Shown one piece after another: positions 27,860 through 63,471 of a stretch of 64,000 nucleotides of DNA. The notes beneath the pieces are model-generated. The model saw only the letters and a program-made list of their open reading frames with translations. It was not told the origin of the DNA and searched no databases. The translations under genes and the position numbers were made by a program. The first letter of the stretch is position 1. Every line of letters starts with the position of its first letter. The stretch comes from Octopus bimaculoides (lineage: Eukaryota), in the NCBI RefSeq assembly GCF_001194135.2, contig NC_068983.1:137266340-137330339 (forward strand). Direction: 5' to 3'.

Positions 27860-28036
27860 ATGGTGAGGAATTATTGCAGAAAAACACAACAGGGTTCATG
27901 GCACAAAGAAAATCTTCAAGGAGCTATTATGGCTGTCTTGAAAGGAGAGCTGGGTTACATGAAAGCTTCTAAACTATTTAGCATTCCAAAAACAACATTA
28001 ATCCGTTATGTAAAGAAACATAAGAACTTGATGATG
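27860..28036 (+). CDS. Exon encoding a pipsqueak-type (psq) helix-turn-helix DNA-binding domain; candidate alternative first coding exon
   Basis: Acceptor tattttcag|ATG (AG 27858-59) and donor ATGATG|gtaagt (GT 28037); 177 nt, phase-0 exit. MVRNYCRKTQQGSWHKENLQGAIMAVLKGELGYMKASKLFSIPKTTLIRYVKK matches the psq HTH pattern of pogo-like transposase N-termini. Confidence 0.8.
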
Positions 28037-28551
28037 GTAAGTGTTAAAGTTTATTTATTTTAGCAATTACAAGGAAAAAATTCCGTTTTCTACCGAGAAG
28101 TGGCTTTGTTTTATTGACAAGTCAAATATTGTTGATACATTTGAGTCAGGTATCAGAAATGCTTAGCAACAAAATGTTTAAAGCACTTCTTCCAGCTTTA
28201 CATTCTAACTTCAAATACTGCCAAAGTGAACTTTGCTTTTGTCCTTTCAGAGTTGATAAAATGAGTACCATATGAGCACTAGAGCCAATGTAATGACCTA
28301 TCTTCCTCCCAAAGGATTATTGTCATTGAAGGTAATAGACTGACAGAATCACTGGAACATCAGATAGAATATTTATAACTGTATTTATTCCAGCTTTCTT
28401 CAGGTTGCATTCAAGTCCCAACAAGATCAACTTTACCTTTCGTGTTTTCAAGATTGGTAAAATAAATATGTTAACTACTGAGTTGGACTGGGTATAAGCT
28501 AAGCTCCCTTCTCCAATTCAAAATCACCCATATTGTGCTTAAATTAGAAAC

Positions 28552-28552
<1 letters not shown>

Positions 28553-28608
<56 letters not shown>

Positions 28609-28620
28609 CATCATCATTAC
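28553..28620. repeat. (ATT)n microsatellite
   Basis: Direct inspection. Confidence 0.95.
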
Positions 28621-31519
28621 TATTAAATCATGACCTCATGATTGTGTTGTACTCACAATCGCAAGATTATGGTTTCAATACCTAGACCAAATGGTGCATT
28701 GTGTTCTTGAGCAAAACACTTCATCTCATTGCTCTGTGATAACTTTGACACCTGACATATGGTACGCCATGCACCTCTTCAGGCAGTGTCAATTTAATGG
28801 AAGGTGTGAGCTAAGGTACAGCACATACATTTGCTCGTTATAAACAACCCATTTGTGCAGGTCATTTGGCAAAAGCTGAACATTCATACATCATATTCAA
28901 CGGCAGAGTCTGTCATTATTACTATTACTATTATTGACCCTGGTAACAATCAAGTACTGGAGTCAACTTGTTCCCCCCACTCAAAAACTGCTAGCTCTGT
29001 GCCAAAATTTAAAACCATTATTATTATTATATTCAAATTCCACCGGGGTCAACTTTGCCTTTCATCCTCTTGGGGTCAATATAATATGTACCAGTTAAAC
29101 TCTGGAGTTGATGTAATTAACTTAACCCTTCCCCATAATTGCTGGCCTTGTGCCAAAATTTGAAACCATTATTATTATTATTATAAGGCAGTGAGCTGGC
29201 AGAATCGTTAGCACACCGGGCAAAATGTTTAGCAGCATTTCATCCATCTTTACACTCTCAATTCAAATTCCACCAAGGTTGACTTTGCTTTTCATCCTTT
29301 TGGGGTCAATAAATTAAGTACCAGTCAAGTACTGAGGTTAATGTAATCGACTAGTCTCCTCCTCCAAAATTCCAGGCCTTGTGCCTTTTGTAAAAAGGTT
29401 GATTATTATTATTATTATTATTACTATCATGATAATTAAGTGTTAGATAGCTGGACAAAACAATTTTGTTCACCTCTACATTATGAGTTCAAATTCCACT
29501 GGGATCAACTTTAACTTTCATCCATTCAGGGTTGATAAAATAAGTACCAGCTGAGCACTGGGGTCAATGTCATGGACTAAACCCTCCTCTTAAAATTGCT
29601 GGCCTTGTGCCAAAATTTAAAACAATCATTATTAGGAGCAAGAGATTTATAAAATAGTGGACAAAATACCTTACTATATTTTGTAATATCCCTTTAGATT
29701 CTTAGTTCAAATCACTTTGTGCTCATCTTTCATGCTTCCAGGGTAGATTGAATGAATACCAGTGTATCAACTGTTTCTTTAGAAAAAAATTAATGGCTTT
29801 GTGTCTATATTAGAAACAATTGATATCACTGAGGTGGAGAAGGAAGTACTGCTGCCTAGTAAATTTGTTAAAAGAGTAACAGAAATGACCTCAGTGAATA
29901 GGCCTACTTTTAGCATGTGCCTGTAAGCTGGAAATGATAGATGTGATAGGAGGAGAACTTTACATTTCATCCTTCCAGGATAAAATAAAGTATATTCAAG
30001 TATACTGGGATCAATTTAATTGACTAACCCCTTTCCATGAATTTCTGGTCTCCTGTCTGAGTTAGAAATGATTACTAAGAACAGTAAAATTGATAAACCA
30101 TTGAACAGAATGTTTTGTGATATTTAGTTACACTTTTCACATTCTGAGTTCAAACTCAGCTTGGGGCAACTTTATCTTTCCAGGACTGATACAATAAATA
30201 CTAATCAAGTATTAGGGTTGGTTTAATTGATGTCTATGTAACATATTATTATAGTGGAGGCGTCAAGCTGGTAGAATTGTTAGCACACTGGACGAAATGC
30301 TTGGTGGTATTTTACCCGTCGTTATGTTTTGAGTTCAAATTCTGCCAAGGTCAACTTTGCCTTTCATCCTTTTGGGGGTCAATGTAATTCCCCAAAATTT
30401 CAGACCTTGTGCCTTTAATAGAAAGGATTATCATAGTAGAATTACAGTCCAAATCCAGCTGAAGTCACATTTGTTTTCCATCCTTCTGAGTTTGATAAAA
30501 TATTTTTTTTTGTAGTTTTAGCTCAGAGCTGTGGCCATGCTGGTTCTCTTACTCTTCTCATTCACTCCTAGAACCTCTGTCTCCCTCATTCCTACCCACC
30601 TTGTACCTTCAAAGTCCACTCTGACACTATCTCCAATTTCCAGCTTCACATCATCCCCAACCGCTTTTCTAAAACATGAGTGATCATATAGCTACTCTTC
30701 AGCAAGAAACCTGTTCAGCTCCAGCCCTTTTCCCTCATATTTTATTCCTCTCTATTCTTTATTCTCCTAACAAAGTTCCTCCTTCTCACTCAAGGTTTGT
30801 AGTCTTGCAAGCTGCATGGTAACTTCACTAGTGCTCATTGAAAAAAAGCATCTAGTACACACAGTGAAGTGGTTTTATGAAGAGGCAGCTGTAGAAACCA
30901 TGCTAAAGCTGACACTGGAGCATGATGCAGTCCTTGACTCATCAGATCCTGTCAAACTGTTCGGCCTATGCCAGCATGGAACATGGACATTAAAATGATG
31001 ATGACATATTTGTGTGTGTGTGTGTGTTTCATTATCACCATCATCAACCTTTAATGCCTGTTTACCATGCTGGCAGGGGTTGGATGGTTTGACCAGAAAG
31101 CTGCACCAGGTTCCAGTCTGATTTAGTTTGGTTTCTATGGTTGGATGCCCTTCCTAATGCCAACCACTTTACAGTGTGTGCTGAGTGCTTTTACATGGTA
31201 CTGGCACTGGAACAGGACTCTTGCAAGCTGGTCTTCTTCACCAAGAGATGCAGCCTTAACACTTCTGCTGTGGAGTACGGGATTTCTTCAGTATAGCAAG
31301 GTGCTAGGTCTTTTGTTATCTCATCTGAATGGTTCAGCATTCTGAGGTTGTTAATTCAAAGGCCAAGAGTTTTGTGCATTAGCACTTATCAAACTTATCA
31401 TCACCAAACCTATGTATATATATATGTGAGGATCAGCTGAAAAGTTCATAAGATTCAGCACCATAAAGCAATGTTGTCAAGACCACTGACTTCTTTACAT
31501 TGACTGTTCCAAAGCCTAT

Positions 31520-32590
31520 GATAAAGCTTACCAAAAGCAGAGTTAGCCTTCCTGATTCTGGACTCAATTTCTTTATCCATCTTCGCATCATTGGATACAA
31601 TGGAACCAAGAACAGTTTTTAATGTTTTCCCATCAACATATACAATGGAGGCAACAGTGGGAAGATGGTCAAGAATGAGCTGATGGACAAGATCAGTTTT
31701 TTTTTTATGCTGATGGTCAGATCAAAAGCCTTCGATGCACATGAAAAGTTGTTTAAAATCCATTGCATGTCCTCAAGAGTGCAAGCTACAAGTGCACAAT
31801 CATCTGCAAAGAGCAAATCTTGAACTATTTGTACCAAAATCATAGTTTTTGCTTTGAAGTGCTGTTGGTTGAACAAGCCACCACCAGTTCTGTACTCAAA
31901 CTTTACTCCTTTTTTAACACCTACGAACATTGTTTCCAACATGATGGAGAAATACAAAGCAAATAAGAGTAGTGCAAGAACACAGCCTTGTTTCATCCCA
32001 TTTGAGACTGTGACTGAATCAGACACTTACCTGCTAGATCTAACAGAAGCCATCATCCCTTAATGGAAAGAAATGATGACATTGAGCATTATTTCAAGAA
32101 CACCTAGCTTTCTAAGGACAACCAAAAGAACATCCCTAGATATAGTGTCAAAAGCTTTAGTTAGATCTACAAAAGTAACAAAAACGTCTTGGTTGTGCTC
32201 ACAAACCTTTTCCTGCAGCTGCCTTAGGCTAAAAATCATATCTACTGTGCCTCTACCAGCCCAAAATCCACACTGAGATTCAGGCAACACTAAGCTGGCA
32301 AGGACATCATTTAGTCTGTGTAAGATAAAGCCTTCCAAGGATCTTCCCGGCAACACACAAAAGGGAGATACCTCTATGGTTGTCACATTTGTTGTCTTTA
32401 TCCATATAAAGATGGACAATAGAAGTGTCTTTAAACTCCTGTGGGACTGATCTTGATTCCCAGATTAAGAAGAGTTTATGTAACTTGTTCTGCAGGTGAC
32501 TGCTACCATATTTATATATCTCAGCTGATATGCCATTATTCCCAGACAATGCACACTCTCTCCATCAAAAGAGCATTTACCTGTACTTGT
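31520..32590 (-). mobile_element. RTE LINE reverse transcriptase fragment
   Basis: SQCGFWAGRGTVDMIFSLRQLQEK, FVDLTKAFDTISR, NGMKQGCVLA, LFADDCALVA. Confidence 0.85.
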
Positions 32591-33180: not shown

Positions 33181-33184
33181 TATA

Positions 33185-34882
33185 TCTTAATATATAAAGC
33201 TGAAGTTGTGTGTCTGTGTGAAGCCTTTTTGAAAGTTTATAGAAATCCACATTTTCCACTTTTTCGTAAAAATTTTTACATCAATGGAATTTTATTGAAC
33301 TTTCCAGTGCAGTAATTAGATTTTTTAAATTCCGTTTACTTTGTGTGATTTAAGGGAGATTTGGCTGTTGTTTCTAGCAACTTTTATATTTCTTCCCTTC
33401 TACCTGTACACACAATCATTGACTACAATATAACTCATGTTCATCAATGTTTGGTAAATATACCACGATTTTCAANNNNNNNNNNNNNNNNNNNNNNNNN
33501 NNNNNNNNNNNNNNNNNNNNNNNNNNNNNNNNNNNNNNNNNNNNNNNNNNNNNNNNNNNNNNNNNNNNNNNNNNNNNNNNNNNNNNNNNNNNNNNNNNNN
33601 NNNNNNNNNNNNNNNNNNNNNNNNNNNNNNNNNNNNNNNNNNNNNNNNNNNNNNNNNNNNNNNNNNNNNNNNNNNNNNNNNNNNNNNNNNNNNNNNNNNN
33701 NNNNNNNNNNNNNNNNNNNNNNNNNNNNNNNNNNNNNNNNNNNNNNNNNNNNNNNNNNNNNNNNNNNNNNNNNNNNNNNNNNNNNNNNNNNNNNNNNNNN
33801 NNNNNNNNNNNNNNNNNNNNNNNNNNNNNNNNNNNNNNNNNTTTGGTAAATATACCACGATTTTCATTAGGGTGTTAGTGTTAGGGTTTATGTATCACTC
33901 TCTCCCCCCCTCTTTTACTCTTACTCTCTAAATTATATGTTGAGCGCATAATTACTGCACTGGAAAGTTCACATCGAAAAAATTCCATTGATGTAAACAT
34001 TTTTAAATTCCGTTTACTTTGTGTGATTTAAGGGAGATTTGGCTGTTGTTTCTAGCAACTTTTATATTTCTTCCCTTCTACCTGTACACACAATCATTGA
34101 CTACAATATAACTCATGTTCATCAATGTTTGGTAAATATACCACGATTTTCAATAGGGTGTTAGGGTTAGGGTTTAAGGTTAGGATTAGGGTTAGTGTTA
34201 CGGTTTTAGGGTTAGGGTTAGGATTTTAAGGTTACGGTTAGGGTTTAGGGTTAGTGTTAGGTTTAGGGTTTTAGGGTTAGGGTTGGGTAATCGTGCGGGT
34301 GTTAATCTGAAAAATTACAGAAATGTGAAAATTACCGACCCTGCCATCTATTATAACTTTGTTGTTCTATTTAATGTATACATAGATTATGCCTCCAAAC
34401 AAGAGAGTTTGCTGGGGAAAGAAAGCAACCAGTTTAAAATGACAGCAACAGACTGCAGCAATTCACCACATTCCAGAAGCTACTTTGAACATAATGCAAA
34501 GTGGTGCATCAACATATTCTACCTAATCTGATAGAATTATGGCAAAACTGTGTAGCAACAGATCGCCAGCAATTGCTTCATCAGAAATTGCCATCCTACC
34601 TCCTGCTAAAAGAGATTACCCTGCTATATATAATCAGGGCAGCGCAAAAAGTTTGTTTTGCACAAGCATTTCTACAGCCAATTAGACGGATGAAATTTAC
34701 GTACGCTTAATAATGTTACGCAAAACAGCCTTCAGACTTTCCCTATTAATTTTATCGTCTTTTGAATTATGAACATATTTACATCATAAGGGTTTTTTCT
34801 TTTTAGTTGATTTTCACCTAGCAAGACTTATCGTAGATGGTGTAATAAGTCACACCCGGACAAGGTCGGGTTATACTGCTAG
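33185..34882 (+). mobile_element. Non-autonomous Helitron with internal (TTAGGG)-like tract
   Basis: 5' a|TC ttaatatataaag; 3' hairpin cccggacaaggtcggg then CTAG|t; telomere-like repeats at about 34153-34284; spans N-gap 33476-33841. Confidence 0.7.
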
Positions 34883-36094: not shown

Positions 36095-36150
36095 ATTTCT
36101 CTGTCGCCATATTTCAGTCGATGAAATAAATTTCCGGCGCCATTTTTTGG
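36095..36150 (+). promoter_or_regulatory. Putative promoter with YY1-like motif upstream of the FLYWCH exon
   Basis: GGCGCCATTTT at 36136-36146 and CGCCATATTT near 36104 in CpG-richer sequence about 220 nt upstream of the exon. Confidence 0.35.
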
Positions 36151-36363
36151 ATTAAGTCGTCATAATTTTACACTCTGTAACTGTATTCACGACTTGCACA
36201 GAAAGAACGGAATTTTTTTCAAATAGGAGACGATTGATTTCAGTATAATGTATTCATTTTATTTACAAATTTAAAATTTACTCTTAATTTCAAACTGTCA
36301 TTTTAAAGATTCGGTTACTTCGTTTGGTTACAAGCGGCCTAGGAAATAAACAGGGTTTCCAGA

Positions 36364-36768: not shown

Positions 36769-38347
36769 GTAAGTATATTCACGTGTGTATGTGAAAGCGT
36801 TTGTTTACATGTGTTTAGAGAATGAATCTCGTCAACTGAATAACTCGATTTAAATCTGGCGGCCCATAATTCATCAATTACTTTTTTTCTCGACACCGAT
36901 TTCGTGGACATAAATTCTGTTTCAAAAGATTTTGAAAAATATTACGAAGAAATTATTGTTCGCGCATCTCCGTATTGTAACTTGTGACAGTTATTTTTGT
37001 CAAGTATTGATAGACTGCTCTCGATTAAAAGTACACGTAAAAACGATCTTACTGCTGACTGTCTGCTAATAGCGGGAACGGTGTAGGATACGGAAGTTGC
37101 TTTCAAATATTCTAATTAGTAGTTGACAATAAGCAGTGAATAGTTCTTTTCATGCATTTTAACCTAGAACACTTGCGCTATCGACATTCATTATTCTATT
37201 ACATTAATTGTGCGATATAGGTACCTTAAAAAGAAGAAAGATGTGAAAAATAAAAAGAAACTGATAACATGCTACTAGTCACTGGGAATAAATCGAACTG
37301 TTATGAAAACTGCGCTTATTTCGATATTAACACCTTAAGGGCCGGCGAAAAAAGTAACTGAAAGTAGTTGTTCAGTCCCAAGTCGTCTTTGATTGAATAG
37401 GTCTGTAACCAATATTTTTCCACTCGCCACCACCGTATCTTTTTATGAGTATGTAAGCTAAGCTATGCAATCTAATACGTTTTCTTTGTTAAGACTGTAG
37501 GATGATTTAAGAGAGATTTGGTTGTTATTCCTAGCAGTTCGGGCAACTGCAGAGAGCCCCTCGCGCTAACAAAACTCAGGACAATCGAACGAGTACAGGA
37601 TTAAATCAAGAGCTCCTCAAGTTTGACATGTTTGGTATGATAGTAAACAAAGACCCGACGAGAAAGTTTTTATGGTTACTAGACTAGCTAGGAGGCGCAA
37701 CCACATCCCCCTCATTAAACCCCAATTCTACTATTTTAAACGAAGGACAGATAACATGGTTCTAGATACATTAAATGTGAATAAAATACGGGATGGTCGT
37801 AGCTGGAACGTTTTTGATCATAGATCTGTTCGAATAACAACAAAGACGTGGAAAAAGTTTAGACAGTTTTACTTCTCAAAGATTCGCTGCATGAATTGAC
37901 TATTTATCCATGTGCGTAATAATATAAATAATAAAAAAATGTATTTAATCTCCCCCTCTCTCTTTCATACACACACACAAATAAATTCTACATATTTTGT
38001 CTTCTATTGGCGGTGCTTTTAAGTTAGACATAGCCTGAGCCTAAACTCGCCCAAACCGAAGACACTGGGTGTTTTGGGTCTCATACAACACACATCCTCA
38101 TCCAGGCAACCCAACCGAGGTTGATCAAGCCCAGCCCTATATCCAAGCGACCTCCTACTGACCCCACCGATCAGTGACCAGTTGTTCTTGATAGCTCTTC
38201 TGTTCATTCCTGTAATTATTAAATGCATAGAATTCCATAGGTATCCTTGACTGCCAACCACCACTGGCAAACACCCCAATATTGCGGCAGTCCTCCACTG
38301 TGTACTTGGTTCTCATCAGTTCTTGCGCCTTCCCCATTCGTCTATAC

Positions 38348-38772
38348 CAGGGGTCAGATGACTGAGAGAATGACGAGAGCGAGCCGCATAACCATTTTCT
38401 TTAATACAATACATTGAATACACAACAAATAAAGACAACCAACATGTTTATTTACCAAAAAGTTATCAAAGAAGGTGACGTTAGCAATAAGATAGTTTTA
38501 TCACACCCAGTGCGCACATATCCGAATCTCACAAACTAAGCAGCAAAAAAGGTTAATGAGATTTGTGAAAATGGTGTTTAGCTTTTAAGATATCAATATT
38601 TGCTTTGGAATTGTTGCATCCAACCAAGAGAATTGCTTTCAAATGTTCATCAGTCAACCTCGTTCGATGTGCTGACTTCACATACTTCATTTTTGAAAAT
38701 GTTTGCTCACAGGCATAAGTTGTTCCAAACACGGATGAACTGACCTCGCAGGCCGTAGTTTGGTGACCCCTG
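38348..38772 (-). mobile_element. hAT (Charlie/SPIN-like) deletion derivative
   Basis: Ends CAGGGGTC.../...GACCCCTG; perfect 8-bp TSD GTCTATAC; minus strand VFGTTYACEQTFSKMKYVKSAHRTRLTDEHL (hAT dimerization region). Confidence 0.85.
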
Positions 38773-41159
38773 GTCTATACTGTTGTCTTTACTTCTGTTA
38801 AAGAATTTGGACAAATTCCGTAGAATAGTCTCAGATTTTTTGGCATTTATTTGATTGATTAAGCGTGAATTTTTAAAACTTGATCTCTACTTGTTCAATA
38901 TGCTTTTTTAATAAAAAGAGGGCTTTTCCGATATATCTACAGAAGTGTAGCCCCCCCCCCCACTTTGTTTCCTCATAACTTCCTGAAAAATGGAAATTTC
39001 TAATGAAATTTTCAACAAATACTTTTCAGGTGCTCTAGATTCCGATTATATCGGAATTTGTTGTGAAAATGTTTTTCAGAGAAGATGAGAGGAGTTTTGA
39101 TAAGTCAATAATCTTGATTTTGTTTCCTCATAACTTTCAGAAAAATAGGTATATTTTTAGCAAAATTGTCTACAAATACCTATCAGATGGTGTAGGTTAT
39201 GATTGTCTGGGAATTTAATTGATGACTGCATACAGATACATTCTGATTCACATCAAGTAATTTTTTCAAGATTTTAAGTTTCATTTCATAGATATGTGGT
39301 GTGTGTATGTATTGCGTGCCCATAAAATTTTTCTTTTGTTCTTTTCTTTTTTTTTTTTGGTCTCAAACTGCCGATACAATCATAATCTATGCCACCTGAC
39401 AGGTACTCGTAGAAAATTTCACAAAAGAATAGGGAATGGGTCAAAATGAAGTGTTTTTTAGACAAAATATATTTTTTTACAAATGTTCACTACCTCACAA
39501 AAGCTATATCAGTAAAGCAAATGGTCTTCCCTAAATGCACTATAGCATAATCTGATCACTATTTCAGATAATTATTGCCATTCTCTTTGAGCATATATAT
39601 AAAAGACTAATTTGGCTGGGGCAAAATGAGTAGGCCAAGATGATAAATTTGCCACTTCAGTTCTCAAAAAAAAAAAAAACAGACTCATACACATCACTAT
39701 CCATCCCTAGACATCAGAAATGCGAAAATTAAATATCTAGGTCAAATGAAAGAAGATCAGGGGGAAATGGCACAAGATACGAAATTAACAAAACTTGACT
39801 AAATATTAAAAAAAAAAACTCTTCAGAAAATATTATCTATATCTTCTTCACGATCTGCTGGAGTGTCTTTTACCCCGTTTTAGACATCATATTTTGAAAC
39901 TTGAAAAAAACCAAACTGGACATTAGTGTGAGGAAAAATTGATTTGGAATCCAACAGAGAAAAGAATATTGATTGTTAAACACCAAAAATTACAGTTAGG
40001 TCAAAGTTGAGGAAATATTTCTTGTAAAAAGAGGACTTGCCACCTGATTATGTTTCAGTCTCTCTCAACTTCAACAACTATGCTGACCAATTTTTACTCC
40101 TAAAGATGATGCAATATTTGCAATGTAATGATTTCTAATAGGTTAGGAGAAAATAACAAGAAATCAGAAGTTACTCATTTTACCCTGGTGCTAATTTTTT
40201 CTAACAGTTATGAAGAAACAAAGTCAATGGGAGGAGCACACATGTAGGTGTGTGGGTCTTCCAATTTTTTCTCTTTTTTTTTTTAGTATGACACATTCAA
40301 GATATCATCATCATTTAACGTCCATTGTACATGCTGGCATGGGTTGGATGGTCTGACTGGGCTGGCATGCTGAAAGGCTGCACCAGGCTCCAGTCTGATT
40401 TGGCATGGATTTCTATGGCTGAATGCCCTTCCTAATGCCAACCACTCCATGAGTGTAATGGGTGCTTTTACGTACCACCAGCACAGATGTATGTCATCAT
40501 CATCATCGTTTAACATCTGCTTTCCATGCTAGCATGGGTTGGACGATTTGACTGAAGACCGGTAAACCAGGAGGCGACACCAGGCTCCAGTCTGATTTGG
40601 CAAAGTTTCTACAGCTGGATGCCCTTCCTAACACCAACCACTCCGAGAGTGTAGTGGGTGTTTTTATGTGCCACCGGCACGAAGGCCAGTCAGGAGGTAC
40701 TGGCAACGGCCACGCTCGAAATGGTGTATTTTACGTGCCACCTGCACAGAAGCCAGTCCAGCGGTACTGGCAACGAACTCGTGCCAGATATATATATATT
40801 TATGTATTTATACATATATATCTAAAACGAACTCCATCAGTTACGATGATGAGGGTTCCAGTTGATCCAATCAACAGAATAGCCTGCTCATGAAACTGAT
40901 GTGCAAGTGGCTGAGCATGCCACAAACATATGTACCCTTGATGTAGTTTTCAGAGAATGTCACAAGGCTGGCCCTTTGAAATAGGGTACTACTCATTTTT
41001 GCCAGCTGAGTGGACTGCAGCAATGTGAAATAGTGTCATGCTCAAGGACACAATCTGTTGCTCGGATTTGAACTCACAACCTTACAATCATGAGCTTAAT
41101 ACCCTAACCACTAAGCCACATGCCTTCACTGTATGTATGTATATATGCATACATACGTA

Positions 41160-42416
41160 GAGGGTGCAGTGAATAAATTGCCGTCTAAATTATGCAAAAA
41201 TGAAAATAACACATCTCATTTTAACAGATATATTTACCAAAACTGCATATCTTGAAATACTAAACAGTAAATTTATTCAATAAAATCGCCATTGGCTTCA
41301 ACCACGGCCTCCAGACGACTTTAGAATTTCCTGCAACTCTTCTAGACAGTCTCTTTGTTTAAGTTGGTGAATGCTGCCATATTCATCTTTAATGTTACAA
41401 GGAGTTTTGTTGGTCTCTCACTCAACTGCATCCCACACATAATAATCAAAGGGGTTGCAGTCTGGGGAGTTAGGTGGCCAGATGTTAGGGGTAATGTGGT
41501 CACAGAAATTATCTGATGGTCATTACTGGGTTCTCCTGCTTGTGTGGCATGGTGCAGAGTCCTGTTGCCAGATATAGGGTCTTCTAGCAGCCACCCCCTT
41601 GGCCAAGGGCAGCACTACCTCCTCCAGGCACTTGATGTAGGCTTCCATGTTGAGTCTGAGGCCGTTTGGGAAGATGAATGGAGGCATAACATCACCAACA
41701 CTAGTGATCACTTCAAACACCATGATGTTGACTGGATGTTTGATTTTTATCACTCTTGGTACATGTTTTGGGGACACAGCAAGCCAATGGTTGTTCAGTG
41801 TGTGCACTATCTGATCCTAGCAGAAATTTTTCTCGTCTGAGAAAAATGAAAGCATGTTCAGTTGGAGGGGATGCTTGAGTTTGTTCAAAAGCTTCTTAGT
41901 GCAATCGTTCCTTTTGTTCTTGATGGCTTGGGGAAAAAATTGGCCCTTTCTCATCTTGTATGAGGAATATCAACTGTCTTTATGCACTACATGCCTGATA
42001 AGAAACTCAGACACTCCTGTTTCCCTGCCGATAAACTTGATTGAGATGCAGGAATTGTTGTCAATCTTGGCTTGGATCTCACCAACAAATTTAGTTCTTT
42101 TCTTATCAGAATGATCCGAGTGAGTTTTCTGAGCTGCCATACCTTCGTAATCACCATTGGGCTCATCCAACTCTTTCCAAATCCTCTTCACTGTTGTCAG
42201 AGTGACACCCAAACACTCTCAAATGTTCATAGAGCTTCTCGCATGAATGCTAAGCAGTACAGTATGTAGTTTCCAAATTTCTGGCAGAGTGAACTGCATC
42301 ATGGTGCTGTTTTTCTCACAGACGGTGCCCAGCTCACCCTACAAAACAGTGTAGTTAAGAAACCAATGCATATGTGCGAAATTAAAAATATAAGATGGCA
42401 ACAATTTACCCATTAC

Positions 42417-44100: not shown

Positions 44101-44603
44101 GTAAGTAAAGGGAGATAACTGTATTGTTGCTACGGAATGATTGTTATCACATGGTAACACTCATCAGGTGGCAGCACAGGTTACCAAAACAAAAAGAAGA
44201 AAATGGCAGGCGATTTGTAAAATGTTATCGTTAAACTGAATGAAATTATGAAAAATGTAATAAATGAAGATGATTTCTTACTCAATAAAAACAAGGTAGA
44301 TCATTTATTTTTGTCATAGTTTATCCTTAAAAAGCTATTGAAAATTAGTAAAGAAGTTTCTGCTGTTGTCACATTTCTATCAGTTTTCATTAGATGAAAA
44401 ACTGCTATTTGTCAGTGACATGTGTTTGTTAGGAAAAGTATGAGGGAGATAGAGAATGAGTAACCTGTTATGCATCGTTACACGTAATGTAGGTTGACTT
44501 GAAACGAAATGAATTGGTTAGCAACGCCTTTTTATTTTTTATATTTACTTTCACACTAATAGAAAACGGACTACATACACAAAATACTGTTCCTTCGTAT
44601 TTT

Positions 44604-44693: not shown

Positions 44694-45018
44694 ACTCTTA
44701 GGCGCGCAATCTCATGGTCCCCGCTTTTCTTCTTATACATCCTCATATTCTCTCACACCAACACAATTTCCATCAGACGCCTACACAGACAAATATTATC
44801 TCTCACTACCTCTCTCATTTATTCACATACATACGTCAATGTTAAATCTGGATGGTATCGCTAGAAAATATCCATGCTGATAGAAAAGTGAAAATGTTCT
44901 ACGAGAATTTGATTTTTTTTATTTTCCGGAGAGTAAAATAGCTAATAAAAGTGAACACCCAGTGAATAAATAATAAATGACACAGGCTGGAACTTTGCCT
45001 TCTTTTCTGTTTATGTAG

Positions 45019-45546
45019 GTGGCAATTTTCACTGAAATATTTTTGAAAAAAGATAGTTTTGGATCTATCGTGAAGATAAGCAGATCGATCGAAATAATGC
45101 CCCAACATTGCGTGGTTAGATTTTGTGATACCATTCAGTCTTCGAGTGCAGGATCCGGTACCAGTTTACATCGCTTTCCGAAGGATCCCGTTTTAAGGTC
45201 CAAATGGATCAATTTCGTTCAGACTGGGCGTAAAAACTGGGCACCATGTGTTTCATCTGCCATATGTTCTCTTCATTTCACCAGCGATGATTCTCTAGGG
45301 GTTTTAATGAAGAAATTCGGATGCCGCACACGCGTGTTCTTGAAGCCAGGAGCGATACCCACAATACAGTGCCCTAAAATGACATTGCAAACTTTTCAAA
45401 ATTCACCCACCACACAATATGTTTTGAGCACAGAAAAGCCTACAGAGCAATGGCAGGATTTAGTAAGTCGTAAAGCGAAAAACGATAATATAGTCCTGCC
45501 CGGCAGAAATCCATTAGATCCAAAATTATTTGAAGGAAATTCTCTG
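45019..45546 (+). CDS. Exon encoding a THAP (C2CH) zinc finger; probable start ATG at 45097
   Basis: MPQHCVVRFC...SLHRFPKDPVLRSKWINFV...AICSLHFTSDD...LKPGAIPTI is a complete THAP; acceptor cttttctgtttatgtag (45018); donor TCTCTG|gtaagt (GT 45547), phase 0. Confidence 0.85.
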
Positions 45547-49200: not shown

Positions 49201-52200
49201 AAAGATAGGAATAAGTGAGCTGGCTATACTTCTGGCAGAGGCCACAGATTATATATATATATATGTATATATATATACGACGGGCTTCTTTCAGCTTCCA
49301 TCTCCCAGATCCACTCACAAGGCTTTGGTCAACCCGAGGCTATAGTAGAAAACACTTGCCCAAGGTGCCACGCAGTGGGACTGAACCCGGANNNNNNNNN
49401 NNNNNNNNNNNNNNNNNNNNNNNNNNNNNNNNNNNNNNNNNNNNNNNNNNNNNNNNNNNNNNNNNNNNNNNNNNNNNNNNNNNNNNNNNNNNNNNNNNNN
49501 NNNNNNNNNNNNNNNNNNNNNNNNNNNNNNNNNNNNNNNNNNNNNNNNNNNNNNNNNNNNNNNNNNNNNNNNNNNNNNNNNNNNNNNNNNNNNNNNNNNN
49601 NNNNNNNNNNNNNNNNNNNNNNNNNNNNNNNNNNNNNNNNNNNNNNNNNNNNNNNNNNNNNNNNNNNNNNNNNNNNNNNNNNNNNNNNNNNNNNNNNNNN
49701 NNNNNNNNNNNNNNNNNNNNNNNNNNNNNNNNNNNNNNNNNNNNNNNNNNNNNNNNNNNNNNNNNNNNNNNNNNNNNNNNNNNNNNNNNNNNNNNNNNNN
49801 NNNNNNNNNNNNNNNNNNNNNNNNNNNNNNNNNNNNNNNNNNNNNNNNNNAAAACCAAAGCAACAACCTGGCAGAATCATTAGCATGCCTGGTAAAATGT
49901 CTTTGCATTCTATGTTCAAATCAGTTTTGCTTTTCATCTTTTTGAGGTCAATAAAATAAGTACTAGCTGAGTACTGGGGTCAATGCAACTGACTTACCCG
50001 CTTCCCCAAAATTGCTGGCTTTGTGCCAAAATTTGAAATCATTATTATTATTATTATTATTATTTTGGTCTCTCAGTTATATTTATGAAGTTTTTGAGAA
50101 TTTAGGCCAAAATTATAATAGCATTGATTTCTAATTTGGGAAGAGAATAGATAACTCCACCCATAAGGATTTGAACTCAAGGATGTAAAAGGGTACATAA
50201 ATACAGTAAGATAAAATATCTAATGCTGTATTTATTCTACCATCTATTGCCCAAATGATAATAATAACTGTTTCAAATGTAAGCACAAGTCCTGAAACTT
50301 TGTGGACAAAAGGATTAACCAATTAAATACTTGACTGGTATTTTGCTTTACCAACACTGGCAGGATGAAAGGCAAAGTTGAACTTGGTGAGATTTGAACT
50401 CAGAATGTAAAGAGCTGCAAGACATTTTGCCCAATGCTATAATGATTTTGGCAATCTAACATTTTAACGCTCTAATATTCTGTGGGCTAGCAATGTTAAT
50501 TCTTTCTAATCTTGGTTACAAGACCAGCAATTCTGAGGGGAGGGGGCAAATTGATTACATTGACTGCAATAGTTGACTGGTACTTTACTTTTTCCACCTT
50601 GAAAGATGAAACAAAATGTTGACTTTAGCAGGATTTGAACTCAGAGCTAGAAGAAATGCTATTAAGCATTTTTTCTGACATGTTAACGATTCTGCCAGCT
50701 CATCATTTTTGGGGCTAGCAATAATAACAATAAGACAATCATAAGAGCTGTACAACTGTGCAAGGTTACAAAAATGCAGTGATGTGCCTAACCTCCCAGT
50801 TTAACAACACCAGCTGGCCCTTAGGTTCTTTCAGCAGAGTACATCCTATAGCGAGCATTCAGGTCAGGTCTCCAATATGAGGATAAATTTTGCCCTTCTT
50901 TCCTTTTCGAAGTCGTATAAAAAAAAATTAATAAATAATAAAAAATCAAATAACATTCCATAACTATCAACTCTTGCATCAAGTTTATTGTATGATTTTC
51001 ACAGAGCAGCATAAATTTAATTGCTTCTTTTCTCTAAACTTTATAGTTTTTGTGTCCAGTGATATTCCTAAAATATCGTATTTGTTAAAATTTTCTCTAT
51101 TGTTTCATGTCATTTGTTTGCTGTTTTTTTACCTGAAGCAATAAGCAGACAAACTGGCAGTAATGACAGAACACAAGACTAAATGGTTTACTTTTTCATA
51201 GCTCTGCATTCTAAAGTTCAAATCTTCACAGCATTGTGTTAATCAAAAAGAAAAATATTAACATTAACTTATCATTCAGTTCAACATCTCACACCACTAT
51301 ATTCATGATGTTATCTGGTGGTTTACTGAGGGAAAATGAAATAATGTAGGGATTTCTGATTGAGATTGAGAAAGAGAGAGAGCTGTATATGTCAAAGAGA
51401 CCTTAAATTTATTAAAGTAATGAAATTTGTTAACATCATGTTATTGATAAGCAGATGTGGTTATCATTGCCTTCTTCAGGAGAAATTTAATTCAACACTG
51501 AGTACTGTTGTGCCCACAAACTGACCCAATATTATTTGCATAGGATGAATAATATATTTTCTTTTGCTGAGAACAAAGCACCAGATTGAGGAAGGAGAAA
51601 TGTAGAATTATGTTTGTTTTACCCTAGGGTATTAGGAATCAGAATCAAATCGCAGTCTTGAATTGCCAAAAGCACTCATCTTTTATGTCTACTTTCACAT
51701 GCTGGCATGAGTTGTTTGGGTTGTTATGTGCCAATTCAGTTTTTATTTAGAATAACTGCCCTGCTAGATGAGATGGGGACCACATCTTAGTCTGATATGG
51801 TTTCTATAGTTAAATGCCCTTCCTATTGTTGACCACTTTACACAGTTCACTGAATCCATTTTATCTAGGCATCACTGCTAAAATGATTATCACGTACTTG
51901 AAAAGATTAGAGACCTCCTTTATGTTGTCTCCATCTGTTTACCAAGAAAATACTGAGTATATTTTATCTTAACACAGCACTAGTAGAAAAGCTGTCTTGT
52001 TCTCACAACACATAAGAGTCTTCATTCATTCATTCATTGGCACCAACCAGATGGTGTCTCATTCCCAGTAGTCATAAGACAGAGTGGTAGATGAAAGAGA
52101 GTAATAGAAGAGAACCAAACTGATAAGGAGCGAATGTGATAGAAATTAATAAAATTAACATTTTAAGCTTACACCTTGTGCAAAGGTGTTTACCTCAAGC

Positions 52201-55355: not shown

Positions 55356-58300
55356 CCACATATCAGAGGAGGTTTTAAGTAGTGAAAGTGTAGTATAGTT
55401 CTAAGTTCAGTTCCACTGCATAGCATCTTAGGCATATGCCTTCTTCTATAGGTCCTGGCTGACTAATGAAACTGAATTTAAAGTTAAGACACTACTATAT
55501 ATATACTAGCTTAAAATCCACACTCTGTGCAGACTTTTAAGCTAGCTGCTGCAGAGGTCTAATTGGGCCTGTGGTCCAAAACGAAAGACAGCTAAAAAGC
55601 ATGACTATAATATGTCTATAATGACTTTATGCCCCAATGGTGTTTGATCAGAGTTTAAGGACGGGTGAGAATTAATTTTGTAATGCAATCATTCTGTTGT
55701 TCCAGTCCCAATTTACATTCCAACTGTTGGCCAATTTGTCCCAAAGTTCTTATCTTGATGTAAAATTAAAGCAAATGTCATTTATCTCCCCTCTTGATTT
55801 CTGATTTCATCTGACAAACAGCAACCCATATGCTTTTAAATCAGATCCCAATGCTGAATGTTCAAGAACCAAATAAAGGGCAGCTTTTCAATCTCAGGGT
55901 CATCCTAATTCCAAAAAGGTATAATATAACTATGTAGAGCAAATGTAGACTGAAATGCAGGGATCTTAAACAGACAGAATTTTGCATTTATTATTATTAT
56001 TATATGTATATATTATAAAATCGTCTTGCTCTGGGATTTGGAAACGTAACTTCAAATCACTGTTTAATTACACTATGAGGGAATTTTGTTTTTGTTCAAA
56101 ACTGAGTCTATTAGGGGAAAAAAATAGGTTATGCTCATATACATTCAACCAACTGTGACATCAGAAAAACAAGTGACATCATAAGTGAATCAGCCAACTA
56201 ACTGTCAGAAAAAACAATTGACCAGGATATTTGCTAAACATATAATGTCCTTAAATAATCAACCAACCACAGCATTGGACACAGACAAGTTCAGACTACT
56301 GTTGAGCATGAATGTATCATCAGAAAATATGATAAACAAACAGTGCACTCTGGCAGTCAACCAACCAGAACGCTGGACCACTTGTTGACAAAAACAAATG
56401 TCATTGAGTGAGAAGCAAATCAGGACTTGAAGCTCTGTCTTAAAAACCTATATGCACAACAATATCAGCTGAAAACCTAATTCAAGTTCCACAAGTAAAG
56501 TAAATGATGAACAATTCTCCTTCACACAGCATGATTGGACTTGTAAAAAATTATTTTGTTATTCCGTAAAATCATCATCATATCAAATTGATAACATAAC
56601 TTATTACTGTGAAACCTATTCTAGCATTTATTATTATTACTATGAAATTTATTGAATATTTGAACTCTCATCATTTCTTAATGCTATGAAACTTATTGAA
56701 AACTTAAATTTTCATTGTGTAATTTTGTACTGAAACCTATTGAAAATTTGATTTTTGAACAGATTTTATTGCTATGGAACTTTTCGTGTGCATTCTCTTT
56801 TAAACTCTTATCTTGTTTGCTTTTTCTTTTCCTTTACCATTGAAAGTTTTTTAAATAATGAAACTAGTATAGTATTTCAATAGACTTTAAAAAATTGAAT
56901 TAAAAAAAAAAAAAACCTACAATTCATTTTAAGACCTGATTACATTTTCAACTCCAAAACTTGGATGCAAGTAAATATCTTTTTCCTGTTTTATATAATA
57001 TATATGCCAGCATGGAAGATGGATGTTAAAAAGGCCTCTGCCAGGGCTGTAGCCAGCCCACTTATGTGTACCTTTCCTTCACTGGACACTAAACTCGCTT
57101 GCGAAGACCTATTGAGGCAAGTGAAATCAAAATCGAACAAAATTCGACGACTGGCACCAATGCCAGAATCTCCTTCATTGGACACTTAACTCGACTTGCG
57201 AAAACCTGTTGGGGCAAGTGAAAGCGAAATCGTGATGGCACCTGTACCAGTGGAGCACTAAGAGCACCATTCGAGCGTGATCATTGCTAGAGCAGCTGTC
57301 TGGCTTCCGTGCCAGTGGCACGTAAATAGCACCATTTGAGCGTAATCGTTACCAGCGTCACCTTCCTGGCACGTGAAAAGACATTCAAGCGAGGTCATTG
57401 CCAGTGCTGCTGGACTGGCTCCTGTGCAGGTGGCATGTAAAATACATAATTTTGAGCGTGGCCGTTGCCAGTACCACACGTAAAGCACCCACTACACTCT
57501 CCGAGTGGTTGGTGTTAGGAAAGGCATCCAGCTGTAGAAACTCTGCCAAATCAGATTGGGGCCTGGTGTAGTCAAATCATCCAACCCATGCTAGCNNNNN
57601 NNNNNGTAGTCAAATCATCCAACCCATGCTAGCATGGAAAGCGGACGTTAAACAATGATGATGATAATATCTGTATATATAGATATATATGTGTCTGTGT
57701 ATATATGTGTATGTATATATATGTATATATATGCATATATGTATATATATGTGTATGTATGTATATATATGTATAGAAATATGTATATATATGTGTGTGC
57801 GCATGTCATCTCTTATGTCCCTGCCGTAAGGCTTCACTTCCACACATGCCAGCTTAATTTAATTCGTCCTTACTTGAAAGGCACCTGTTATTTGCATTTG
57901 TATTTGTGTACCATTTTTCCGTTTTTTCCTGTCCTTATTTTCGTATACATTTGCTGCTTTCTTCCAAGGAATCTAGTGCCCTTAGGCTAGAGTTTCCTCA
58001 GGGCTGGCCAGATTGGAGCAGTCTTGCGTAGAACCAGCCGAAGCTGCAAAGATGATCTTGAACTCCACTGAGGAAAGCAAACTCCAAATGACCCATCCTA
58101 GTTTTTTTCTTGTCCCTTTTTGTATCATCTATTGCATTCTTGTCCCATTTTTTGCATTCTTTTATATATATAGATATGTATATATATGTGTGTATATATA
58201 TATATATATATAGCAATATATGCTGAAAATATAGTGATAAGAACCGTTGCACCGGTCCTCCCTTCCAAATGCAACTAAAAGCGTATGTACCAGGGAACAT

Positions 58301-58859
58301 GTATGTATGGGAGTGTTTATATATACATATATGTATGTATGTATGGGTGGGTGGGTATATATATGTGTCTGTCCTCCTCATATATAGTAACAATAACAAT
58401 TGACTCTTCGGTGTGCATGTATAGACATTTATGTATGTACATCTAAACACACACATAGGTATTTATGTATATCTGTATATGTTAAAGTATGCATGCATAT
58501 GCATATATATGTGAGTTTTTATGACTCTTTATATGGTTTTTTTTATATGCTTTTATATTTATATTTGAATTTTGTAAACTTCATGAACTGAACTTTGTAA
58601 ATCTCTGAAGAGGCCTAGAGAATCATGCATGTACCTTCACTGCATCCATTTCATCTACCAATTACTCCAGCTTACTGGAGTTATATAGATAGAATGAGGC
58701 ATGCCACCTCTAGGCCAAAACAGCTGTAAGACTTTGTCCCTTCTTCGGTCACTAGATGTCCTTTTGAATTTTTATTTTTAATATGACATGGTGCGTCATA
58801 TATATATATATATATATATGTGTACATATATATTTATGTATATATGTACAGGCCAATCT

Positions 58860-59620
58860 CTCTGACTTCGCATCTCAGTAAAGTTATGGAGTGAATCATC
58901 AGAAAGAAGTTGATAATGTTCCTGGAAGAAAATGACCTACTGAACAATACACAGCATAGCTTCCGTCCAGGAAGAAGCTGCCTCACACAGCTTTTACAGC
59001 ACTATGACTGGGCTTTGAAGCAGCTGTTTGACCAATTAGATGTCAGTGTGATACACCTTGACTTTGTAGAGGACATTGCTGATAATCTTGGAAAGTGGCT
59101 GCATGACTTCCTTAAAAACAGAAGTCAAGTAGTTTGAAGCATTCCAATGCCACTACACTAAAAAGATTGAAACAGTGCAGCAGATGAGCTATAGGGATAG
59201 GCTGAGAAAACTACTGCATTTCTCCCTGGAGCAAAGGCATGAGAGATATGCAATAATATACATATGGAAAATCCAAGAGGAGCTAGTACCTAATTTTGGC
59301 ATTGAGTGTTATACAAATGGCAGAACTGGCCACCATTGTATTGTACCAAAGGTACCATCCACTCCATCTAAATTCAGGACTAGGTACTGCAATAGTCTAG
59401 GGCTCAAAGGCCTAAAGCTCTTCAATGCTCTGCCACAAAAATTAAGAAATTTGCATAAGGTGGAGATAGATGTTTTGAAAAAGGACCTAGACATCCTCCT
59501 CTCCACAATACTGGATGAACCAACAGCCCGACATGGGGTACAGATGAGGGCAGCAGAATCAAACTCCGTTATACACCAAATGTACCAACAGCTGGGACAA
59601 AGGCACATACAGGAAAGGTA
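58860..59620 (+). mobile_element. CR1-like LINE fragment (RT start + 3' end, internally deleted)
   Basis: FLEENDLLNNTQHSFRPGRSCLTQLL...IHLDF; SYRDRLRKL...SLEQR...LFNALP...KKDLD. Confidence 0.8.
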
Positions 59621-59699
59621 ATGTGAAACATCCAGACTGAGGAAGTCAGAAAGACCATGGCGGTGCTCCAGCATGACCACAGCCGCATGGCTGAAACAA

Positions 59700-59841
59700 G
59701 TAAAAGAGATGTATGTATGCGTGTATGCATATATGTGTGCATGTATGTGTGTGTGTATATGTATATATATGTGTGAGTATGTATATATATATATGTGTAT
59801 ATGTATATATATGTGTGTGTGTGTGTCTGTATATATATATA

Positions 59842-59930
<89 letters not shown>

Positions 59931-59935
59931 GTGTG

Positions 59936-59966
<31 letters not shown>

Positions 59967-59975
59967 ATGTGTGTG

Positions 59976-60006
<31 letters not shown>

Positions 60007-60060
60007 ATATATATGTATGTATAAATATGTACGTATATATATGTATGTATGTATAATATA
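59700..60060. repeat. Compound (TA)n/(TG)n microsatellite
   Basis: Direct inspection; it generates the spurious YI/CV ORFs. Confidence 0.95.
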
Positions 60061-60437
60061 GGTGCAAGCACGGCGTAGTGGTTTAGAAGTTTCCATTATA
60101 TCGTCCTCCACCCACTAGGGAGCAGTCTAAACGTAAGCCGAAATGATTGTCGTGCTAAATAAAGCTTACAGTACACATTGTCTTCTCTATGAATTGTTAA
60201 AAATATACTAAATGTGCACTGAGGAATTCCTTATGTAGATCCTGCGACTAAAGTGTAGTACAGCAGATGACGCCTGGTAACCGAATGTGGTGAACATGCT
60301 CTCAAGGCACACTATTAGTTACATACCTCAAAACAAGGTTTGGATACTACAACTTAAGGTATCCTGTCAAAACTTTAATTTTAAACTTAACCTAATATAT
60401 CTATATATAGATAGAGAGAGAGAGCTTCTCACAGAAT

Positions 60438-61047
60438 TACCAGTTTTCATTAATGTTTTATGTAGTGTTTTTGGTACCGAAAGACTTTTATAGAACAGAA
60501 AAAAATGTTTGTATTCGGATTTATTTCATGCAAAAAATTGTCTCATTTCGATAATTTCAACCAATCACTGACAAGTATTCAGCTGATTACAAGTTACTCC
60601 TTTGGCACTTTAAGCGGTGTAAAGCGTATTTAATCTCCATTACTTCTGACATTTTGCAGCGGCAACACACGTGTGTTCGTTTTCCTTAACCCTAATCGGC
60701 TTGCTCCTTCCCTCAAAAACCATGCCTTGTGCCTATAATAGAAAGGTTTACTAGCTACTGCCAACATGCTTCAGCCATTTTTTGACAAGGAAATAATAAT
60801 TTTATCACCGCCGAGATTCGTTTGTTTACGTAGTCAGCACTTAATTTTGACGGCTGAATGGACGTCAGTCATTGGTTGAAATTACAGAAATACGACAACT
60901 TTAACATGAAATAACTTGCGATGTAGGTTTTTTTTGTTAAGAAGACTAAGAGAAAAAGATGTTTTATATGACACATTCTACCAGTGTCCCAAGTTTCAAA
61001 GTGTTTCGTTAAGAAAATACTGGTGCCCCCGTTTTGAACAAAATCCC
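60438..61047. mobile_element. Second, degraded copy of the 8346-8896 MITE
   Basis: Shares the internal sequence (cagttttcat...ggtaccgaaagact...gacgtcagt.attggttgaaattacag) and right TIR ctggtgcccccgtttt; left TIR degraded. Confidence 0.75.
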
Positions 61048-62534
61048 AAATTTCAGTAACATTGCCATTACACTGATAATAATCGAAGAAAATCAAACGA
61101 AATTTATACTGAAATGTTACACATATAAACATTATACAAATTTAGAACACAAAACAATAAACATTTTCAAAGATAGGAACGAAATATTAATTTTGAAACG
61201 TTCCAAAAATATGTACGCAATACAGGAAACTTGCTACATTCAATATTTTATCCACTCTTTTCACTAAATTCAAATATTGCTGATAATTTCAATTCTAATA
61301 AATTATTTCTCCTGGCATTTTTGCACCGGTTACAGTTATTGCATCTGCAGGAATTCTGATTTGTGTTCCGTGGTGAAAATCTTCATTGTGATTAAAATGG
61401 CACCAAAAGGAAAAGAATTGTCTGAAGATTTGAAGAAAATTATTTTTAATTTGCACAGGAATGGTTTAGGATACAAGTTAATTAGCAAACGAATACATAT
61501 TAGCGTAAACACAGTTGCCAAAATAATTCAGAAGTACAAAGCTACTGGACGGCTAAGAAATAAACATCGTCCAGGTCGCCCTTCTATTTTAACTGCGCGT
61601 GATATTCGCCACATCCAACGATGCGTGATGGACGACAGGCGTCGTACCGCTTCATCTTTGGCCCAAGAACTGTCTTCTGTAAGTGAAAAGAATGTATCCG
61701 CTCAAACAGTTCGCCGAAGTTTGAACCGGTGTGGTCTTCGTGGACGTATTTCTCGTAGGAAGCCTCTCCTCACTACCAGGCATAAATCAAGTCGTCTTTC
61801 TTTTGCCGAAGCCTACGTAAGTAAAGGGAAGGAGTTTTGGAATGAAATTCTTTTTTCTGATGAGACTAAAATCAACCTGTTTGTGTCAGATGGTATTAAA
61901 TGAGTATGGTAACGACTAGGTGAAGATAGTGACAGATGCACCGTGCCTACCGTGAAGCAAGGCGGCGGAAGCGTTAGGTTTTGGGGATGCCTGTGTGCGG
62001 CTGGTGTGGGAGGACTCAAATTTATTGAGAGAACAATGGGTTCAAGGCTTTATTGTGACATATTGCAGAAAGCAATGTTGAAAAGCATCAAATAAAAAGG
62101 TAAAGGCATTGCCTTGACCTACCATGTCACCTGATTTCAACCCAATAGAACATGTGTGGGGTGTTTTGAAAAGGAAAGTTGAGGAGAGAAAAAGCCCCGC
62201 AATGTAACACAGTTGAAGGATATCATTCAGGATGAATGGAAGTCGATTTCATCGGTTAAATAGGGAAATTTATTTGACTCTATGCACAGAAAGCTTAATG
62301 CAGTCATTGAAAGCAAGGGCGGTCACACCAAATACTGAATATAGCCAATAATTCTCTGGGGGTGTACATATTTTTGTATCGTTTGAAAATGTTTATTGTT
62401 TTGTATTCCAAATTTGTATGTATGTATAATATACTTTATTCTGTATAAACTTCGTTTGATTTCCTTCGATATTATCAGAGTAATGGCAATTTTACTGAAA
62501 TTTGTTTAGGGGTGTACATACTTTTGTGATATAC

Positions 62535-62535
<1 letters not shown>
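61048..62535 (+). mobile_element. Tc1-family transposon with long IR/DR-type TIRs; transposase (ATG 61397) disrupted
   Basis: MAPKGKELSEDLKK...GRP...WNEILFSDETKINLF...TVKQGGGSVRFWGC, later PDFNPIEHVW; stops after 61900; repeated ggggtgtacata at about 62359 and 62509 in the right TIR. Confidence 0.85.
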
Positions 62536-62606
<71 letters not shown>

Positions 62607-62615
62607 TATATATAT
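62522..62615. repeat. (TG)n(TA)n microsatellite
   Basis: Direct inspection. Confidence 0.95.
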
Positions 62616-63431
62616 CACATTCTGAATCCTTGCGTGTGCCTGTTGAACGTTATTAAATATAAAACTATAAACATATTTATATGAGTGTATCCACATACAC
62701 ATTTATAGAAGTGTTGCAGCAAACTCAACACTACGAATTATTTTAAATACAGCAATATCTTTTGTTATCGTTAACTGTTCTCCACCATCGAGTAAAAGTT
62801 TTATAACCGAAAACAATATTAAGACGGAAATTTTACTATTTTATCACACTGAAAGGTTAGAGGCCATAACAAATAATCTCCCTTGGGCTGTTCTGCTAAG
62901 ATAGAAGAATTAATTTACTTACAGGTTTTGCAAGAGTCACTAAATCCCTTTCCTGATAATGCTCTTGTTCATATGAATGATATCAGAGTGAAATGATGAG
63001 TATCATATAATGTAGAAAAGAATCGAACAAATATCATAAAATATGATACCACATCTCCCTATTCTGTGATGTATTTGTATAGTATCTTGTTCAAAGCAAT
63101 GATGTGAAATTCATCTTCCCTTCCATCTATCCTGGTAGTAACACTGAGTAGAAATTTGACCAAATATTTGACAAACATGACCATCACTTCAAATGTTATA
63201 TTTAGGATTATAATATTCATGCCCATTTTAAGAGAGTTATGTGTGGTTTGTAAGTGACTTAGCTACTTATTTTAATAGTTTAAAATGACAGCTATATACA
63301 CTCACTCCTCACACAACTTTCAGGAGTCCCATCATACTGTCCTATTTTGCTTACTTGTTTATTTTAGTGTCTAACGAAATTAAAATGCTTTATATATTAT
63401 TTAATATAGAATATGTTTATTTTTTCTCCAG

Positions 63432-63471
63432 TTGAAAACTCAAAATCAGATAAATGAAGAATATGATGTTG
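63432..63471 (+). CDS. 40-nt internal exon (LKTQNQINEEYDV), candidate first shared exon downstream of the DNA-binding-domain exons
   Basis: Strong acceptor tttattttttctccag| and donor GTTG|gtaagt; only phase-0 entry is free of stops (the other two frames hit TGA). Confidence 0.6.

Follow-up and report, generated by a model that had tools for sequence, protein, structure and literature searches.

Exons and products of LOC106877732

We analysed 64,000 nucleotides of the Octopus bimaculoides genome (contig NC_068983.1, positions 137,266,340 to 137,330,339; hereafter the window), in which the stretch from 16 to 64 kb forms the upstream portion of the 5′ region of LOC106877732. This gene lies on the + strand and is represented in RefSeq by at least 36 isoforms (names reach X36), whose products are named 'uncharacterized protein LOC106877732'. 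The variable modules encoded in the window are two THAP domains, a psq helix-turn-helix (HTH), a CENP-B_N domain with a Tc5 HTH, a FLYWCH domain and a Tc1 paired-like HTH, and every one of these exons is left in phase 0 (Table 1). A preliminary description of this DNA had proposed an array of four interchangeable exons (psq, CENP-B, FLYWCH and THAP) spliced to a shared exon at 63432. All four were confirmed on the + strand with the donors proposed for them and an in-frame stop 1-18 codons beyond each donor, and their folds were recognized by Pfam above the gathering score against which each family was judged. The shared exon is flanked by a good acceptor and a good donor, and frame 0 is its only open frame. 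The list itself was incomplete, as the THAP2 and Tc1 HTH exons must be added, and the array is wider than 27860-63471: it begins by 16 kb and extends past 64 kb, with most of its members beyond position 64000.

Table 1. Features of the window, numbered from its first base
Feature	Position	Strand	Details
5′ exon, coding end MSNDEDLVAN	16060-16089	+	donor GTGAGT at 16090; 5′ untranslated region reaching about 100 nt upstream
THAP2 first coding exon, 89 aa	20189-20455	+	Pfam THAP; phase-0 donor GTAAGT; in isoforms X4 and X7
THAP + HTH_Tnp_4 + DDE_Tnp_4 element	20.2-22.4 kb		
Optional mini-exon, 75 nt (NIQVNG...TEQL)	21487-21561	+	acceptor ttgcag; donor GTAAGT; phase 0-0
Truncated HTH_Tnp_4 + DDE_Tnp_4 remnant (Harbinger/PIF type)	21813-22397	+	Pfam
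psq HTH exon, 59 aa	27860-28036	+	HTH_psq 39 bits; acceptor ttttcag abutting the ATG; donor GTAAGT; phase 0-0
Reverse transcriptase	32066-32347	-	Pfam scan
CENP-B_N + HTH_Tnp_Tc5 first coding exon, 162 aa	35100-35585	+	Pfam 31 and 50 bits; donor GTATGA
FLYWCH first coding exon, 135 aa	36364-36768	+	Pfam FLYWCH 47 bits; donor GTAAGT
Weak hAT dimerisation trace	38625-38732	-	Pfam scan; inside 37932-41910
5′ exon end MKNVINEDDFLLNKNK	44248-44295	+	donor GTAGAT
THAP exon	45019-45546	+	acceptor tttatgtag at 45018; ATG 45097, 150 aa; Pfam THAP 64 bits; donor GTAAGT
Frameshifted Tc1	61.3-62.9 kb		
Tc1/mariner paired-like HTH exon, 140 aa	61397-61816	+	HTH_SB + HTH_Tnp_Tc3_2; donor GTAAGT
Frameshifted Tc1 transposase catalytic-region remnants, intronic	61817-62900	+	three-frame translation read by eye; no Pfam call
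First shared exon, LKTQNQINEEYDV plus one base	63432-63471	+	cag/TTG...TTG/gtaagt; entered in phase 0, left in phase 1

Open reading frames (ORFs) that end at a splice donor are more numerous on the + strand of the window than expected by chance. Five distinct ATG-initiated ORFs of at least 55 codons terminate there at an in-frame GTAAGT, compared with one on the - strand and a mean of 0.11 (maximum 2) in 200 shuffles. The assembly gaps at 20494-21266, 33476-33841, 49392-49850 and 57596-57605 are all intronic and are crossed by no exon or reading frame; listed ORFs that span them were rejected as artefacts of N. Because all exons of the window lie on the + strand in transcript order, cis-splicing is sufficient to join them.

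Test products, each consisting of one or more variable exons followed by the 596-residue constant part, were looked up by exact sequence in the protein collection. With the CENP-B exon as query, an exhaustive HMMER search found XP_014782195.1 (P0005), a protein of 758 aa in which the exon makes up residues 1-162 at 100% identity and is followed directly by LKTQNQINEEYDV. Joining the constant part to the CENP-B exon (XP_014782195.1, X5), the FLYWCH exon (XP_014782198.1, X9), the THAP exon (XP_052822529.1, X6), the Tc1 HTH exon (XP_014782213.2, X8) or the 5′ exon at 44248-44295 (XP_014782224.1, X35) reproduced a RefSeq isoform exactly, as did THAP2 plus psq (XP_014782197.1, X7). The product with THAP2, the mini-exon and psq (XP_014782194.1, X4) was not built, but is a member of the same cluster (P0174) and was mapped to the window. 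Exact RefSeq products therefore exist for positions 28036, 35585, 36768, 45546 and 61816 joined to 63432, which bears out the earlier proposal that one gene places different transposon-derived DNA-binding exons on a common exon. The psq exon with the constant part alone had no exact match in the protein collection, and no 'MQ' 5′ exon of isoform X36 (ATGCAG/GT) was found in the window.

The routes into these exons differ. Products with CENP-B, FLYWCH, THAP2 or Tc1 begin at the ATG of the exon itself, while the psq and THAP exons are entered through acceptors from 5′ exons that lie upstream. The psq exon is internal, preceded either by the exon at 16060-16089 or by the THAP2 exon (X7, X4; the mini-exon is in X4 and not in X7), and joins on to 63432. 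In the first case psq is the sole binding domain, as in XP_014782201, which the supplement of Mukherjee and Moroz (2023; PMC10027918) lists as MSNDEDLVAN, the psq exon and the LKTQNQ... constant part. The mRNA given there for XP_014782201 runs from the exon at 16060-16089 into the mini-exon (...GCCAAT/AATATACAAGT...), while in the protein entry psq follows that exon directly; this discrepancy suggests either an additional isoform or a mismatch in that table. The exon at 44248-44295 joins the THAP exon or passes straight to 63432, giving in the latter case X35, which has no binding domain. Within the THAP exon tail there is a further in-frame GTAAGT at 45463, after ...EQWQDL, and a product using this donor is absent from the protein collection.

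Could the exons be spliced serially into one multi-domain protein rather than serve as alternatives? Serial use, which the preliminary description had named as a point that would speak against it, does occur, with THAP2 and psq (with or without the mini-exon) forming an isoform class that has two binding domains in series, and the psq and THAP exons both have in-frame acceptors. However, the other serial products that we built (psq+THAP, psq+CENP-B, FLYWCH+THAP, and THAP2+mini-exon+psq continued by THAP or by CENP-B) were all absent from the protein collection. An in-frame route leading into the THAP exon was also rejected, as an 8-bp indel between the acceptor at 45018 and the ATG at 45097 in the orthologue described below breaks any upstream frame. 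Serial assembly as the general rule is therefore exceedingly improbable.

The remainder of the constant part, beyond the window, includes one BTB/POZ domain (Pfam BTB, 41.6 bits against a cut-off of 20.5; residues 384-487 of 758 in the CENP-B isoform), whose closest solved relatives are IVNS1ABP, ZBTB17/BCL6 and SLX4. This domain corresponds to the common C-terminal effector that had been predicted. The remaining isoforms on record have additional THAP, winged-HTH and Brinker-type (Brk) exons, none of which maps to the window; they join the constant part at three points further along. Some of the THAP exons beyond the window resemble duplicates (P0166/P0173, P0165/P0167). With a probability of about 0.85, we regard LOC106877732 as a single BTB gene with many alternative 5′ exons, which carry DNA-binding modules from different DNA-transposon lineages and are joined to a common body.

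Two observations concern the start of the constant part. Its residues 29-45 (HFVGGNGPTRDHPDPLPV) resemble the C-terminal half of the THAP2 exon at 20372-20422 (HFVTFNGPSKDHPLPSI; 65% over 17 aa, E = 0.02), and the short THAP first exons P0164, P0165 and P0167 end in ...VCSK, with the zinc-binding His apparently supplied by the constant exon HFVGGNGPTRDHPDPLPV. Together these likenesses suggest an ancestral split THAP-BTB gene. In the next intron, about 130 nt past the shared exon, a LINE-type endonuclease ORF (Exo_endo_phos_2, weak; 63600-64000) starts and leaves the window.

Comparison with related octopods

We also examined whether the exons are retained elsewhere. Searches with the FLYWCH and THAP exons matched only near-identical orthologous ORFs in Logan assemblies of a related octopod, and neither exon is multi-copy in that collection; multiplicity, which if genome-wide was to count against the array, was not seen there for these two. 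The search with psq gave no candidates and was uninformative. On one contig of the related octopod (L001) the two exons occur in the same order as in the window; this contig is collinear with 35.4-45.8 kb, at about 82% identity by blastn, indels included. It lacks some 4 kb present in the window (37932-41910), and it conserves the ATGs and GTAAGT donors of both exons as well as the 5′ exon at 44248-44295. All that a more distant relative (L003, L004) retains is the THAP domain with a donor.

The FLYWCH and THAP exons are clearly under purifying selection, to judge from the substitutions that separate them from L001. For FLYWCH there were 10.5 nonsynonymous and 15.5 synonymous differences (omega, or dN/dS, 0.15; one-sided binomial p = 3e-6). 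For the whole THAP exon the counts were 12 and 13 (omega 0.25), unevenly distributed between the THAP domain (0 and 9; omega 0) and the tail (12 and 4; omega 0.8). The CENP-B exon, part of which is on L001, has a 26-bp frameshifting deletion there and an omega of about 1.3, and it looks unconstrained in that species. The expectation of constraint and orthologous retention therefore held for FLYWCH and THAP and failed for CENP-B. The FLYWCH exon is on four Logan contigs; the three that were retrieved (L001, L005 and L006) all start inside the CENP-B exon, 24-33 bases apart, and the upstream part of this exon may be repetitive in that genome.

Outside the exons, two blocks conserved in the related octopod (36095-36184 and 44185-44304) are candidate promoter regions. 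The motif AAAATGGCR was considered as a common promoter element upstream of the FLYWCH and THAP units and rejected, as its 3 matches against 2.1 expected are no more than chance. In the intron at 36769-36900, some 110-130 nt past the FLYWCH donor are 97% identical in the related octopod, a conservation equal to or above that of the exon, and an 18-codon read-through ORF is kept; this segment may help to control splicing or may point to intron retention.

These data also bear on whether the exons are mainly stand-alone small genes, whose unspliced transcripts would stop shortly past the donor and yield proteins with only a binding domain, like truncated P-element repressors. Read-through ORFs of 153 aa each are retained in the related octopod, the 110 nt past the FLYWCH donor are more conserved than the surrounding intron, and the 2015 gene set contains a THAP-only model of 198 aa (UniRef A0A0L8GD14). 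However, the GTAAGT donors are conserved and their phase is uniform, the RefSeq models are spliced products, and the THAP tail ahead of the donor is nearly neutral. We consider stand-alone function as the main role very unlikely, although such products could coexist with splicing in the form of intron retention.

Several observations weigh against the view that LOC106877732 is a single gene with an array of alternative binding exons. The selection comparison is confined to the FLYWCH and THAP exons and part of the CENP-B exon. In L003 the THAP exon is kept, and nothing else of the window is found within 10 kb on either side. Of the members that had all been cast as first exons, CENP-B and FLYWCH are first coding exons, whereas psq and THAP are second exons. 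The isoforms themselves are computational RefSeq predictions. A FLYWCH-to-constant junction identical to that of the O. bimaculoides isoform is annotated in O. vulgaris (CAI9720176.1), but that model may derive from O. bimaculoides protein evidence. Finally, the CENP-B exon is frameshifted and has a high omega in the related octopod, and the Tc1 exon lies within an element that is decaying, so that some isoforms may be non-functional chimeric transcripts.

Extended to the whole array, this last point would make it mostly transcriptional noise: transposon promoters fire, the donors splice to the nearest strong acceptor of the host BTB gene, and the annotation pipeline records the chimeras, of which one or a few matter. 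The neutral CENP-B exon, the predicted nature of the models and the Tc1 donor, which lies inside a decaying Tc1 reading frame, agree with this explanation. Against it stand the FLYWCH and THAP exons, which are under clear purifying selection at an orthologous locus and keep their donors there. All exons of the window also have intact frames and phase-0 exits, while the ORFs of adjoining transposons are broken. The annotation of O. vulgaris includes the FLYWCH isoform too, and the isoforms have been kept over two annotation releases. The NCBI pipeline normally builds alternative isoforms from transcript evidence only. Noise as the main explanation is, in our judgement, distinctly unlikely.

Transposon surroundings and known systems

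Pfam scans of ORF segments, which covered most of the window, and of stop-masked translations in three frames 3′ of each of the four exons first proposed detected no transposase catalytic domain adjoining the psq, CENP-B, FLYWCH or THAP exon. The possibility that these are mere first exons of intact elements was rejected because no catalytic domains lie 3′ of them. Decayed DDE remnants do adjoin the THAP2 and Tc1 exons. The remnant directly 3′ of THAP2 and the mini-exon is likely their source transposon, and the Tc1 exon uses a GTAAGT donor within the former transposase reading frame. The nearest database relatives of the CENP-B exon are pogo/Tigger transposases carrying DDE_1. A mariner-like transposase fragment (41526-41816, - strand) was seen by eye within the 37932-41910 insertion and was not called by Pfam.

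The architecture invites comparison with the Drosophila genes mod(mdg4) and lola (also fru, ttk and broad), in which, as in LOC106877732, a constant BTB part is combined with dozens of alternative DNA-binding exons at one locus; mod(mdg4) even shares the use of FLYWCH. However, in the Drosophila type the BTB domain is N-terminal and the variable exons are 3′. In LOC106877732 the variable exons are 5′ with BTB downstream, and choice would be exercised through the promoter or 5′ exon instead of the 3′ exon or trans-splicing. The octopus gene therefore fits the earlier characterization as a mirror image of mod(mdg4). Its variable domains belong to several unrelated folds, in contrast to one in mod(mdg4) and lola, and its BTB cannot be assigned clearly to the insect TTK type.

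In the protocadherin and UGT1A clusters, tandem variable 5′ exons with donors are spliced to a first constant exon, an arrangement that the CENP-B, FLYWCH and Tc1 exons match. Those clusters consist of tandem paralogues, whereas the exons of the window have unrelated folds captured from different transposons, psq and THAP are second exons with small 5′ exons of their own, and later isoforms of LOC106877732 enter the constant part at the three further points. The variable part also differs, being a DNA-binding domain here and an extracellular or substrate-binding domain there.

Cosby et al. in 2021 reportedly described host-transposase fusion genes that arose by splicing capture (POGK, KRABINER and others). 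LOC106877732 resembles them in that splicing joins, in frame, a host protein-interaction domain to the DNA-binding domain of a transposase whose catalytic domain is missing, as the Pfam calls indicate; a protein with CENP-B_N, Tc5, SCAN and C2H2 domains (P0021) is an example of such a fusion. However, these genes usually represent one capture each, with the host domain N-terminal, while LOC106877732 has many captures from several superfamilies and an N-terminal transposon part.

Several isoforms of the locus were listed by Mukherjee and Moroz (2023; PMC10027918) under LOC106877732, namely XP_014782195.1 (CENPB BTB), XP_014782194 (BTB THAP PSQ), and XP_014782201 and XP_014782223 (HTH-PSQ BTB). 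The authors noted that Octopus THAP and CENPB factors carry BTB. They counted the isoforms as separate factors, took BTB as a transposon component and never mentioned isoforms or alternative splicing. Their supplement has the same order of binding domain then BTB in O. bimaculoides LOC106877745 (HTH-CENPB-BTB, an adjacent LOC number), LOC106872008, LOC106875595 and LOC106875079, so that this architecture may characterize a family of genes. No account of the locus came up in literature searches on LOC106877732, octopus THAP/BTB, alternative first exons or host-transposase fusion. The architecture is thus present in public database models and apparently has never been described as such; the novelty suggested for cephalopods would lie in the description, not in the isoforms, which are in RefSeq.

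Proposed mechanism and meaning

If LOC106877732 works as its architecture suggests, separate promoters ahead of the variable exons would let promoter choice pick the binding domain, as in the protocadherin and UGT1A clusters. The BTB domain would allow isoforms to dimerise and to recruit cofactors, and one locus would thereby encode a family of regulators that differ in their DNA targets. The array would gain members when a transposon inserts upstream and a donor past its binding domain comes into use; the Tc1 and THAP2 exons, each beside its own decayed catalytic part, illustrate such an origin.

A further reading, which we hold only tentatively and consider unlikely, is that the locus acts in genome defence, as an evolving trap in which the DNA-binding domains of transposons are caught. 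Any DNA transposon landing upstream of an ancestral THAP-BTB gene could donate its own promoter and binding domain, and the resulting isoform would bind the ends of its source family and bring BTB-bound repressors to them. If true, this would parallel, at the level of proteins, the surveillance exerted by KRAB zinc fingers or piRNA clusters, and the choice of isoform might be cell-specific.

Returning to the array of alternative binding exons, if this reading is true a single gene has repeatedly equipped one BTB scaffold with DNA-binding domains of at least four transposon superfamilies (P/THAP-type, pogo/Tigger, Mutator-like FLYWCH and Tc1/mariner). LOC106877732 would unite three routes to regulatory diversity, namely variable first exons, BTB isoform families and transposase capture. 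It would also offer a system for studying the birth of transcription factors, because captures of different ages adjoin one another: FLYWCH and THAP are constrained, while CENP-B and Tc1 look recent or decaying. Counts of 'expanded' transposon-derived factors in octopus are, moreover, in part counts of the isoforms of one locus.

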